This document shows positions 26,520-62,131 of a stretch of DNA of 64,000 nucleotides, piece after piece. The stretch's first letter is position 1. Every line of letters begins with the position of its first letter. This stretch comes from Macrostomum lignano (Eukaryota). The translations under genes and the position numbers were made by a program. Location: NCBI GenBank assembly GCA_002269645.1, contig NIVC01000037.1, positions 868,001 to 932,000 of the forward strand, read 5' to 3'. The notes below the pieces were generated by a model, which saw only the letters and a program-made list of their open reading frames with translations, was not told the DNA's origin and searched no databases.

Positions 26520-26798
26520 TCAAGAGCAAATGCCGCCCTGCGGATGGACTACAAGCGAGGGATCCTTCAGGTCCACGCCTTGGTGGTGCATGTCCTCCTG
26601 CTTGAAGCTGCCCAGCTGCTCCATGTGGCCCATCAGCATGGCTCCATGATGGTGCAGGCCGTGATGATGCTGCTGGTGAAGCTGATGGTGAGCCATGGCT
26701 GGACTGACTGACTCGGCTGACACGTTGTCCTCGGATGACCTTGTCCTGGTCTGCAGCTTCTTCTTCTTCATTCGACGGTTTTGAAACCACACTTTCAC
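26520..26798 (-). CDS. Post2: Posterior Hox Post2, last exon (homeodomain helix 3 and His-rich C-terminus)
   Basis: Acceptor ctcgcccgcAG|[19 protein letters not shown]...[15 protein letters not shown]...GICS*. Confidence 0.93.
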   Translation of the reverse strand: [92 protein letters not shown]

Positions 26799-27349
26799 CT
26801 GCGGGCGAGTGAGCGGGACAATCTCCATCATAGTGAGTCTGACGGACTTTTAGGACATTCCAAATGATAAAAAAGTGTTCTTTTTAATAAAAGGTTCGCA
26901 ATCAAAACAGGATAGATCTACTGGGGTATTGTGAGACAGACTTTTAAGGATTCTACTCTCATCGCCACTACAAGTAGTTGACCAACCCTTACGAAAGGGT
27001 AGCGATAGGGTCAGATTGGTTCGAGTAGACTCCCACAGTCACAATCACTTGTTACGGCTGGGGTTAGGGTTAGGGTTGCACACCCAAAGCACCCATATTA
27101 TTCCCCGCGGTGAGTCCGAGGTTTATTGTCAGTTCTATCTATAGCAATGCACCACAGAATCGCGAAAGAAGTTCCTGATTAATCTGAAAATATGATGATC
27201 CACTCGCTTTCCATAAATAATGAACTGTGTTTTTTAGACTACGTTCTCCGGTCTGTCATAGACTAATTTTTTTCGAATAAGTTGTATAATATAATTAGTA
27301 GTCTACTTCCTAGGGTGACTATCAATAGTATGAAACGAGCATGGCTTAC

Positions 27350-27486
27350 CTGACGCTCAGTCAGATGCAGTTGGCAAGAAATTTCCCATCGTTTTTGCCG
27401 GGTGATGTAGGCGTTCATGAGGAACTCGCGCTCCAGCATGGCCGTCTGGTAGCGAGTGTACGGCTTGCGCTTCTTGCGGCTGCGCA
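27350..27486 (-). CDS. Post2: Posterior Hox Post2, homeobox exon (homeodomain residues 1-44)
   Basis: Acceptor cccccgcAG; [45 protein letters not shown]; donor CAG|GTAAGC at the classical homeodomain 44/45 position. KPYTRYQT and [12 protein letters not shown] are spiralian Post2 signatures (Post1 has YSKYQ and KPKRWELS). Confidence 0.95.
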
Positions 27487-27509
27487 CTGCGGGGGCGGCG
27501 GTGGGGGAG

Positions 27510-28260
27510 AATCAGGTGAGGCCGGGTGGGGAATCACGTGAGAAGGGGTGGGGAATCAGGTGAGAGCGGGTGGGGAATCACGTGAGAAGGGGTGGGGAAT
27601 CAGGTGAGAGCGGGTGGGGAATCACATGAGAAGGGGTGGGAATCAGGTGAGGGCAGGTGGGGAATCACGTGAGAAGGGGTGGGGAATCAGGTGAGAGCGG
27701 GTGGGGAATCATGTGAGAAGGGGTGGGAATCAGGTGAGAGCGGGTGGGGAATCAGGTGAGGGCGGGTGGGGAATCAGGCGAGAGCGGGTGGGGAATCAGG
27801 TGAGGGCGGGTGGGGAATCAGGTGAGGGCGGGTGGGGAATCACGTGAGAAGGGGTGGGGAATCAGGCGAGAGCGGGTGGGGAATCAGGTGAAGGCAGGTG
27901 GGGAATCAGGTAAAGGCGGGTGGGGAATCAGGTGAGGGCGGGTGGGGAATTGTGTGAATTGCAGGAGGATAATCAAGGGGAATTGCGGGAGGGGAATCAG
28001 GGGAATTGCGGGAGGATAATTAGGGGAATTGCGAGAGGATAATCAGGGTATTGCGGGAGGATAATCAGCAGGGGAAGTGCGGGAGGTGAATCAGGGGAAT
28101 TGCGGGACGTAAATCAGGTGAATTGCAGGAGGGGAATCAGGGGAATTGCGGGAGGTGAATCAAGCTAATTGCGGGAGGTGAATCAGGTGAATTGCGGGAG
28201 GTGAATCAGGGGAATTGCGAGGGGGATCACGTGAATTGCGGGAGAGGAATTGGGTGAATT
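27510..28260. repeat. Two adjacent G-rich minisatellites in the Post2 intron (ggggaatcaggtgagggcgggt; ggggaattgcgggaggtgaatca)
   Basis: Units of ~20-23 bp. Confidence 0.88.
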
Positions 28261-59213: not shown

Positions 59214-60294
59214 CCGGCTGTGAAAGAGGGACAGTAACAGAAGCATACACCATAAAATTCGTGGTTAATGCATTAATTAGATAAAAATATAATGTTTGCA
59301 GCCAGTTTCTAACAAATATCTTATTAGTCGCTGCATTTTTTGTTCAAATGCATATCATGTAATATACTCATCATATCATATCATGTACTCGTACTTTGGC
59401 ATTGGCTACCGTCTAGACAGATTTTTCTGTCTGCTTTCTTGGCTCGTTAATAATAAAAAGAATAAATGAAAGATAGGTAAGGTAGTGAGAGAGAGAGATT
59501 TGTTCTCAAACGCATATCTGCAGAGGCCAGAAATTTGTGGGTACTATTATTCTGCTTACATTGCTATTTAGTGCCATTATAATGTGCTATTCAAGCACTC
59601 CAGTCGAGAGAGAGAGAGAGTTAAGTTGCTATACTGACTTTTGCGCCCTCAAGTGCAGCTCTCCTCAAACCCTCCGGCGGTTCAGGGTCCTCTCGTAGCT
59701 TTGATGCTTGCCGCCGGCACTGTTTCCAGACTGCCTGCTAGCTGCCGTTTCTCTGGCCCGGGGACTTCTGAAAACAGAGGTCCTTGGACGGGCGTAGTTT
59801 CCAAATTTCGGGTCTGCTAGTAGTCCATGGCTCAGGCGGCGCCTTCGTCTGCCTTTCTCTTTCTGCATAGAATGGTGTGGAATCGAGATGGTCGGCCCGG
59901 AGTCAAAGGCTCTCTCCCTCTCTCTCTGGGCTCCTGCGCCACCTGCGGCAGCAGCTAGCAGCAAAAAAAGTTAGAAAAAATCCAGTCAAAAAAAGAAACC
60001 AAACCCCTCTCATTGCGCACTAGAAATGTTATAAGCCATAGCGCCTACAGTGGGCGGTACACGCAATTGTAGCGGGTTCTCTGCCTGAAACAGAAGCCAT
60101 AAATTTTGCCGCCTGTCTCAGGCTCTGCCACCCCCACCCCCCTCCCTCAGAACCCATTCGGCCGAAACTCTATCTTGGCTATATTGAACAATTAGTTTAT
60201 GGAGTTAATAATATTCTAACTAAATAAACAGGTATATAGCTGCTAGCTATTCTGACCGTACTAAATGTCTGCCATGACCTAGTGTCAGAGTGAG

Positions 60295-61460
60295 ATGCTG
60301 GCGCCACAACCACATTAGTGTCAGCTGCTGGCGCCACAACCACCATATTGTCAGCAGCTGGCGCCACAATCACATTGTGTCAGCAGCTGGCGCCACAATC
60401 ACATTGTGTCAGCAGCTGGCGCCACAATCACATTAGTGTCAGCTGCTGGCGTCACAACCACCCTAGTGTCAGCTGCTGGCGCCACAACCATCTTAGTACC
60501 AGCTGCTGGCGCCACAACCACCATATTGTCAGCTGCTGGCGCCACAACCACCATATTGTCAGCAGCTGGCGCCACAATCACATTGTGTCAGCAGCTGGCG
60601 CCACAATCACATTGTGTCAGCAGCTGGCGCCACAATCACATTAGTGTCAGATGCTGGCGTCACAACCACCCTAGTGTCAGCTGCTGGCGCCACAACCATC
60701 TTAGTACCAGCTGCTGGCGCCAAAACCACCATATTGTCAGCTGCTGGCGCCACAACCACCATATTGTCAGCAGCTGGCGCCACAATCACATTGTGTCAGC
60801 AGCTGGCGCCACAATCACATTGTGTCAGCAGCTGGCGCCACAATCACATTAGTGTCAGCTGCTGGCGTCACAACCACCCTAGTGTCAGCTGCTGGCGCCA
60901 CAACCATCTTAGTACCAGCTGCTGGCGCCACAACCACCATATTGTCAGCTGCTGGCGCCACAACCACCATATTGTCAGCAGCTGGCGCCACAATCACATT
61001 GTGTCAGCAGCTGACGTCACAACCACCCTAGTGTCAGCTGCTGGCGTCACAACCACCCTAGTGTCAGCTGCTGGCGCCACAATCATCTTAGTACCAGCTG
61101 CTGGCGCCACAACCACCATATTGTCAGCTGCTGGCGCCACAACCACCATATTGTCAGCAGCTGGCGCCACAATCACATTGTGTCAGCAGCTGACGTCACA
61201 ACCACCCTAGTGTCAGCTGCTGGCGCCACAACGATCTTAGTATCAGCTGCTGGCGCCACAATCACATTAGTGTCAGCAGCTGACGTCACAACCACCATAT
61301 TGTCAGCAGCTGGCGCCACAATCACATTAGTGTCAGCTGCTGGCGCCACAACCACCCTAGTGTCAGCTGCTGGCGCCACAATCACATTAGTGTCAGCTGC
61401 TGGCGCCACAACCACCCTAGTGTCAGCTGCTGGCGCCACAACCACCCTAGTGTCAGCTGT
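60295..61460. repeat. Minisatellite, ~24-30-bp unit tgtcagctgctggcgccacaaccacc, with a 208-bp higher-order repeat
   Basis: Identical minus-strand ORFs at 60399, 60607 and 60815 show the 208-bp periodicity. Confidence 0.92.
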
Positions 61461-61863
61461 TGTCACGGCGGCCGTAATAGTCAGGGCACTCCTAGTTTCA
61501 GGTAGAGTAGATCGAAACAGTCCTATTGATAATGAGTCTACTATCAATAATTGGGAAAAACTCCAATTCGGAATGATTATTCCCCAGCCCCCTCCCCCCG
61601 GTACACCTCGCCGCCTCATCTCTTCGCCTATTCGCCAGCGTTTAGGCGAGAGAATCCAGGAGGAGGAGAGCCGCCCCCCTCCCCAGGCCCGGCCGCTCCG
61701 GACCAACCGGCCGTTTTCAAGCCGGGTCGCGTGCGAATTAAATCTCTCTCTCTCTCTCTCTCTCTCACCCTCTCTCTAATATAACTGCCAGATTTGATTC
61801 GATTTTTAAAGCCGCCCGCTGCGACAACTATCTATTCCATATATCAGACATATATTAAACCCG

Positions 61864-62131
61864 ATGACTGGGGTGCAGCGCAACTCGCAGCAGCACAGAG
61901 CAGGGATGCATCAGCAGCATCAGCAGATGCTGCATGGCGGTCTACCACATCCAATCTATCCCTGGATGATGGAGACTCGAGGCCACAGCGCTGGCGGAGC
62001 AGGAGGCGGCGGCGGTGGCGGTGGCCATAGCCGATCCGCTTCAAGGACAGCTCAGTCGGGACGTCAGTCTGCAGTGGACGGCGTCGGCTTTGACATGGAA
62101 TCGGCGACCGAGTTTAGCAAAGGAGATGCTG
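61864..62131 (+). CDS. Hox gene hexapeptide exon, probably Hox3-like; homeobox lies beyond the window
   Basis: MTGVQRNSQQHRAGMHQQHQQMLHGGLPHPIYPWMMETRGHSAGGAGGGG...; YPWM at 61957-61968; strong donor G|GTAAGT at 62132 (phase 1). The (Y/F)PWMxE(S/T)R context and a linker of more than 50 aa are typical of paralogy group 3. The ATG follows an in-frame stop at 61807. Confidence 0.75.

Follow-up and report, generated by a model that had tools for sequence, protein, structure and literature searches.

In a 64,000-nucleotide stretch of the genome of the flatworm Macrostomum lignano (GenBank assembly GCA_002269645.1, contig NIVC01000037.1, positions 868,001 to 932,000 of the forward strand; hereinafter the window, with coordinates counted from its first letter), we recovered the posterior Hox gene Post2a, the first exon of Hox3 and, between the two, a hairpin resembling the miR-993 type of microRNA (miRNA). 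The two genes are arranged head to head and diverge from each other, Post2a on the minus strand and Hox3 on the plus strand, with 32,417 bp between their start codons (61864 minus 29447); the hairpin is 20 kb from Post2a and 12 kb from Hox3, upstream of both. We consider it probable that the ancestral spiralian Hox cluster left these two genes as a remnant, which came to its present form via rearrangement.

The two Hox genes and the interval between them

The protein encoded by the posterior gene, which we model with three coding exons (Table 1), contains a Pfam Homeodomain (PF00046; E=2e-21, 76 bits against a cut-off of 22.9), and its top named database matches are all Post2 proteins, from Platynereis, Capitella, Helobdella, Phoronopsis and molluscs. 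The homeodomain is identical to that of M. lignano Post2a at 60 of 60 positions, to that of its Post2b at 57 and to Schmidtea Post-2b at 53, while the Post2 homeodomains of annelids, a phoronid and a mollusc (a bivalve) share 48–49 positions with it and Abd-B 40. By these counts it appears nearer to Post2 than to other posterior genes, and the residues are of the Post2 type. The open reading frames (ORFs) of M. lignano Hox transcripts, including ‘Hox3’ and ‘Post2a’, are given in the supplement of Currie et al. 2016 (PMC4815179), where the complementary DNA (cDNA) identical to the Post2 gene of the window was assigned to Post2a. Exon 3 matches this cDNA (MLig_HOX10_RNA815_27715) with 100% identity. 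Exon 1 codes for poly-Gly, poly-Ala and poly-Gln tracts and carries a 293-aa ORF upstream of the homeobox exons; here the cDNA matches in two segments, SYLFAPHEMMLP at 28707–28742 and RLDEFADPDSAAG at 28669–28707, both with 100% identity and in differing frames. As it stands, the spliced coding sequence (CDS) is out of frame, and the addition of one C to the C-run at 28708–28710 yields an unbroken ORF of 398 aa that encloses the entire published Post2a ORF (187 aa), residue for residue. On the strength of this complete identity (100% at the protein level), the gene is the published M. lignano Post2a.

The boundaries of its homeobox exons are evident from the sequence: exon 2 ends in ...LHLTERQ followed by gtaagc at 27350, and exon 3 opens after a cag at 26798. 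For the junction of exons 1 and 2, we adopted the strong donor G/GTACGT (28668/28667) because the published cDNA shows its use. A join via a weak phase-1 donor (C/GTGCAT), which had been a candidate, was dropped, the window having a 1-nt indel relative to that cDNA. The missing C might represent a homopolymer error of the assembly or a frameshifted homeologous copy of the gene. The intron that splits the homeobox at position 44/45 (TERQ/VKVW) is common to Macrostomum and to the Post2 genes of Opisthorchis viverrini (locus L005, 535–2163) and Schistosoma mattheei (locus L004, 10040–10174; here the second half of the homeobox is more than 9 kb distant), and the homeobox is uninterrupted in three annelid- or mollusc-type Post2 loci (L001–L003). 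This intron may be a flatworm-wide character of Post2.

At the other end of the interval, a 91-aa ORF (ATG at 61864) contains the hexapeptide IYPWM, whose YPWM (61957–61968, plus strand) is the sole one across the six frames of the window; at least one YPWM occurs in about 7% of simulated sequences of the same composition. A database search with this exon gave no match at E<=10. The published transcript supplies its identity: translated from 61825 to 62130, the window agrees with residues 1–102 of the Hox3 cDNA MLig_HOX3_RNA1310_15265.1 at 101 of 102 positions, and the match stops precisely at the predicted phase-1 donor. The ORF of the cDNA starts with QLSIPYIRQILNPMTGVQRNSQQHRAGMHQQHQQMLHGGLPHPIYPWMMETRGHSAGG, runs to ...EFSKGDA and then proceeds into a group-3 homeodomain, which shares 53 of 60 residues with vertebrate Hox3 and 47 with Apis zen (a divergent Hox3 orthologue), against 39–45 with Pb, Dfd, Scr, Pdx and Gsx. 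Judged by this match, the exon with the YPWM is the first of the published M. lignano Hox3 gene. Together, the cDNA matches place the window in M. lignano or a genome nearly identical to it, in agreement with an ORF nearby whose best relative is also from M. lignano; they led us to reject annelid or clitellate, bryozoan and gastrotrich origins, which initial database matches and published papers had suggested. The homeodomain is seen through the cDNA, the homeobox exon being located beyond the right end of the window; no Hox3 homeobox was found in the remaining minisatellite stretch (62132–64000). A scan for bacterial promoters and terminators upstream of Hox3, a scan type irrelevant to a eukaryote, returned nothing. 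The only mismatch among the 102 residues falls in the in-frame 5′ leader (61849–61851, plus strand), where the window has CAT (His) and the cDNA ORF has Gln; it may distinguish alleles or homeologues.

Searches with 13 homeodomain queries (tblastn), combined with a six-frame regular-expression and motif search, found exactly one homeobox in the 64 kb, that of Post2, and no further homeobox, half-homeobox or helix-3 motif in the interval or elsewhere in the window. A split homeobox in the interval would have shown in these searches because the two halves of the Post2 homeobox were each picked up separately (E-values 1e-4 to 1e-18). The non-repeat ORFs of the interval have no Pfam domain. An organised Hox cluster would comprise several co-oriented, collinear genes without foreign genes among them; the window instead has two divergent genes, no central gene and, directly downstream of Post2a, non-Hox ORFs. 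A first-pass annotation made from the letters of the window alone had described a Post2 homeobox gene and a ‘Hox3-like’ YPWM exon, head to head with 32.4 kb between their ATGs and no other homeobox between them. The former call is upheld by the Post2 database matches and the identity to the Post2a cDNA, and the latter by the Hox3 cDNA with its group-3 homeodomain downstream of the matched exon. The orientation and spacing likewise agree with our measurements, the bounds that it gave (26520 and 62131) coincide exactly with the Post2 stop codon and the exon end, and a split central-class homeobox, which it had named as a finding that would speak against its proposal, was not found by tblastn or the six-frame search.

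Table 1. Features of the Post2a–Hox3 region in window coordinates (slashes mark splice junctions; strand is left as a dot for the interval)
Feature	Coordinates	Strand	Remarks
Post2a exon 3	26520..26798	-	homeodomain residues 45–60, C-terminal tail and stop codon (26520)
Post2a intron 2	26799..27349	-	within the homeobox, at position 44/45
Post2a exon 2	27350..27486	-	homeodomain residues 1–44 (tblastn, Pfam); donor CAG/GTAAGC
Post2a intron 1	27487..28667	-	GT...AG; mainly a 22-bp minisatellite (TRF array 27509–28260)
Post2a coding exon 1	28668..29447	-	ATG at 29447; donor G/GTACGT, phase 1
C-run in Post2a exon 1	28708..28710	-	window 1 nt shorter than cDNA; frameshift
Interval between start codons	29448..61863	.	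32,416 bp; no homeobox, no ORF with a Pfam domain; 46% tandem-repeat arrays
miR-10-family hairpin, miR-993 type	49701..49794	-	5′ arm about 49768–49792; 3′ arm 49703–49725, seed AAGCUCG
Hox3 exon 1	61825..62131	+	cDNA match from 61825; CDS 61864–62131; phase-1 donor G/GTAAGT after 62131

The miR-993-type hairpin

The 3′ arm of the hairpin, GAAGCTCGTATCTACAGGAATAC, is the only match in the window to the miR-993-3p pattern, with three mismatches, and none of 100 shuffled sequences matched. The reference sequence was checked against the published table for Bemisia tabaci (PMC12484754). In that insect, a mir-10-family hairpin with the mature sequence gaagctcgtctctacaggtatct lies 148 kb from miR-10, and the two are on opposite strands (PMC12484754). 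Over 94 nt, the M. lignano sequence folds into a stem of about 30 bp (-40.9 kcal/mol, z=-3.5; none of 200 shuffles was as stable); its long terminal loop, of about 37 nt, is a caveat on the assignment to miR-993. We classified the hairpin as miR-993-type because the identities of both arms are highest to the Bemisia sequence of this type: the 3′ arm shares 20 of 23 positions with it, the first nine being the same, as opposed to 13 with Bemisia miR-10 and 17 (with three gaps) with oyster miR-1991, and for the 5′ arm the corresponding counts are 17 of 24, 14 and 12. The 3′ arm also has the beginning, GAAGCUCGU, and the seed (AAGCUCG) by which mature miR-993 is recognised. On these comparisons, the hairpin is a miR-993-type member of the miR-100/10 family, and the call of a miR-993 hairpin in the first-pass annotation is sustained by the seed, the 3′-arm identity and the fold. 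Whole-window Rfam scans, with both gathering and E-value thresholds, found no miRNA family at the hairpin; no separate miR-993 model matched in any Rfam scan, and Rfam appears to be without one. We favour placing the hairpin on the minus strand because the 3p seed is exactly conserved there.

miR-993 is a Hox-embedded paralogue of miR-10 that arose early in protostomes (PMC3049427), and in arthropods it is flanked by Hox3 (or pb) on one side and by Dfd on the other (Pace et al. 2016, PMC4862073). Here, its counterpart has Hox3 on one side and Post2a on the other, and neither Dfd nor a canonical miR-10 was found in the window. An 8-mer complementary to the 3p seed, CGAGCTTA, is present at 24741–24748 on the minus strand, that is, on the strand of Post2a and 1.8 kb past its stop codon; we put no weight on this site because the number of seed-match sites in the window is about that expected by chance.

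History and possible workings of the pair

Because arthropod miR-993 is positioned between Hox3 (or pb) and Dfd, a linkage of Hox3 with the hairpin is to be expected, and we take it to be the ancestral part of the arrangement; Post2a would then occupy the former place of Dfd and the central genes. The likeliest route would be an inversion of the Post2...Dfd block, with one end of the block immediately 5′ of Post2 and the other shortly ahead of miR-993. Such an inversion would give the order Post2 (minus), hairpin, Hox3 (plus), with the two genes head to head; the central genes would thereby come to sit past the 3′ end of Post2 and would later have been dispersed or lost. Under this proposal of a single inversion, the hairpin should still have the orientation to Hox3 that it had ancestrally, and the proposal is plausible only on that premise. 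Several observations weigh against this history or against parts of it. The 26 kb downstream of Post2a, where the inverted block would have placed the central genes, contain no homeobox. Searches around the Post2 genes of Schistosoma, Opisthorchis and three other loci came up with nothing within 10 kb: near Post2 in the spiralian locus L001, there is one chance TACCCTGTA without a fold, miR-1991 was not found within 10 kb in the Pinctada locus L002 or the mollusc-type locus L003, and the S. mattheei locus L004 has no miR-993-type match. At the hairpin itself, a focused Rfam scan gave mir-10 (RF00104) only 12.6 bits, where gathering requires 47.5, and did so on the plus strand; furthermore, the two strands fold about equally well (-39.6 kcal/mol on plus as against -40.9 on minus). 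Finally, 46% of the interval consists of minisatellite or microsatellite arrays, several of them 1–1.7 kb long, and this repeat load, together with the 1-nt indel relative to the cDNA, calls for caution over the contiguity of the assembly.

The Rfam match and the nearly equal fold on the plus strand are what one would expect if the hairpin were transcribed from that strand, along with Hox3, or from both strands in the manner of iab-4/iab-8, so that our minus-strand annotation would be wrong or incomplete; a hand alignment that gives the plus-strand 5′ arm about 19 of 24 identities to miR-993-5p, with one gap, points the same way. Yet neither arm on the plus strand keeps a known seed, whereas the minus-strand 3′ arm preserves the miR-993 seed and first nine nucleotides, and the z-score of the fold is poorer on plus (-2.5 as against -3.5); we thus regard transcription from the plus strand as unlikely. 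Alternatively, the hairpin could be the positional counterpart of miR-1991, in which case its linkage to Post2a would be the retained one and Hox3 the newcomer. Oyster, limpet and Capitella are reported to have miR-1991 in the gap that separates Post2 from Post1 (Xu et al. 2014, PMC4138081), the M. lignano hairpin, read on the strand that we favour, lies upstream of Post2a in the same orientation, and miR-1991 and miR-993 have related 3′ arms. The arm identities given above (20 of 23 with the same seed versus 17 with three gaps for the 3′ arm, and 17 versus 12 for the 5′ arm) argue for miR-993 over miR-1991, and the 5p seed of miR-1991 and miR-10 (ACCCUGU) is not retained, making such a derivation distinctly improbable.

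Two further alternatives concern the neighbourhood of the genes and not the hairpin. The adjacency of Hox3 and Post2a could be an artefact, namely a chimeric join made within a minisatellite array of a repeat-rich, partly duplicated genome. The share and length of the tandem arrays in the interval would permit it, the indel in Post2a and an ORF resembling a G-protein-coupled receptor (GPCR) that is split over two frames suggest that the sequence has errors, and M. lignano is cited as whole-genome duplicated. Set against this, a random chimera would hardly join two Hox genes, the Hox-cluster miRNA between them sits in unique sequence (49668–50227 is non-repeat), and long reads easily span arrays of 0.2–1.7 kb, all of which leaves a false join very unlikely. 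In keeping with the unclustered state reported for the Hox genes of Schmidtea, Schistosoma, a polyclad and M. lignano itself, and with the non-Hox ORFs immediately downstream of Post2a, would be a secondary juxtaposition, in which Post2a was brought beside Hox3 and miR-993 after the cluster had already dispersed and the pairing has no ancestral or functional meaning. We doubt this as well: residual proximity is the simpler reading because fragments of one ancestral cluster begin on the same chromosome, and one inversion of the Post2...Dfd block yields the exact head-to-head order with miR-993 in between. On balance, we prefer a cluster remnant left by rearrangement.

As for how such a remnant might work, the two genes would be driven by separate promoters, one at either end of the repeat-rich interval between them, and it is pure inference on our part that Post2a and Hox3 may share this interval as one divergent regulatory region. 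Drosha and Dicer would process the hairpin from a non-coding transcript or one upstream on the Post2a side, releasing a 3p product of about 22 nt with the seed AAGCUCG that would dampen target mRNAs, as other Hox-embedded miRNAs do. A far more ambitious possibility is that Post2a, miR-993 and Hox3 form a conserved, constrained unit in macrostomorphs or all rhabditophoran flatworms, with a shared bidirectional regulatory landscape and a hairpin that is released from a Post2a-side transcript and acts on Hox3 or other Hox mRNAs, as a minimal ‘posterior prevalence’ circuit that outlasted the disintegration of the cluster; we give this little credence.

Other features of the window and comparison with known Hox systems

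Downstream of Post2a, an apparently intronless unit of two ORFs (about 170 aa and about 525 aa) is tandemly duplicated at 19200–21334 and 22529–24616 on the plus strand; its products look like multi-pass membrane proteins and have no Pfam match. The ORFs of this tandem pair seem to be ankyrin-related, their best relatives being M. lignano ‘ANK_REP_REGION domain-containing’ proteins (42% over 110 aa). A full phmmer search with the 522-aa paralogue (23048–24616) found distant relatives, the best of them from M. lignano, and a homologue search with the neighbouring 527-aa ORF gave no match. Eleven ORFs of the window, looked up by exact sequence among protein and contig collections, returned no entry. 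At 12885–14539 on the plus strand, a GC-rich pair of ORFs that overlap in two frames has a weak match to rhodopsin-type seven-transmembrane receptors (E=0.025); here a frameshift or an intron probably interrupts a receptor gene. A transfer RNA (tRNA)-like element at 17894–17963, also on the plus strand, passes the gathering score for tRNA in Rfam (33.5 bits) but is missed by ARAGORN, and its T-arm looks truncated; we may be dealing with a pseudogene or a repeat derived from a tRNA. Minisatellites with periods of 9–36 bp and the tetranucleotide arrays (TATC)n, (GTCA)n and (AGAT)n, of up to 340 copies, occur at an extraordinary density throughout the window (e.g., 4795–6102, 15651–17021, 52842–54581 and 62515–63805; 55 TRF rows at a score of at least 150), and because of these dense arrays many of the long ORFs are spurious.

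M. lignano is a transgenic-ready model of regeneration from an early-branching flatworm lineage, and it has been cited as lacking a Hox cluster. The novelty of the present locus is modest: both genes are already published, and what appears to be unreported is their adjacency and the hairpin, in one more disorganised Hox remnant of a kind already known. We found no report in the searchable literature of the Hox3–Post2a adjacency or of this hairpin in M. lignano, nor of such a pair in any flatworm. If verified, a tight Hox3–Post2a pair with an embedded miR-993-type gene would refine the statement that there is no cluster, would furnish a datable rearrangement character for flatworm genome evolution and would offer a compact locus of about 36 kb for testing whether Hox genes that have stayed neighbours still have enhancers or miRNA control in common. 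Even then, the general picture, that spiralian Hox clusters decay in fast-evolving lineages, would be unchanged.

Among known systems, the Hox clusters of Lottia gigantea and Capitella teleta resemble the M. lignano locus in having orthologous Hox3 and Post2 genes, a Hox-embedded miR-10-family hairpin and tens of kilobases between genes; unlike it, they comprise 10–11 co-oriented genes, with Dfd to Lox2 between Hox3 and Post2, where M. lignano has two genes head to head and no central gene. The arthropod arrangement of Hox3, miR-993 and Dfd (Pace et al. 2016, PMC4862073) is similar in that the hairpin directly adjoins Hox3, on the flank opposite to pb and lab, with the same 3p seed. It differs in that the other neighbour in M. 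lignano is Post2a and not Dfd, the hairpin is apparently on the strand opposite to Hox3 and no miR-10 proper is nearby. The miR-1991 of molluscs and annelids, flanked by Post2 and Post1 (Xu et al. 2014, PMC4138081), is likewise a miR-10-family hairpin located 5′ of Post2, but the M. lignano sequence belongs to the miR-993 type, and Post1, a gene that flatworms are reported to be without, is absent from the window. Closest in lineage are the Hox genes of other flatworms (Schmidtea, Schistosoma and Prostheceraeus), which also share the general unclustering and the 44/45 intron of Post2. M. lignano, Schmidtea, schistosomes and a polyclad have all been described as having no Hox cluster and only sporadic linked pairs, in line with the first-pass annotation, which had spoken of flatworm Hox genes as generally dispersed. 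The residual pairs reported in these animals are two Hox genes that share a contig in Schmidtea and, in a polyclad, two Post2 genes in linkage; the M. lignano pair, in contrast, combines an anterior with a posterior gene and encloses a conserved Hox miRNA.

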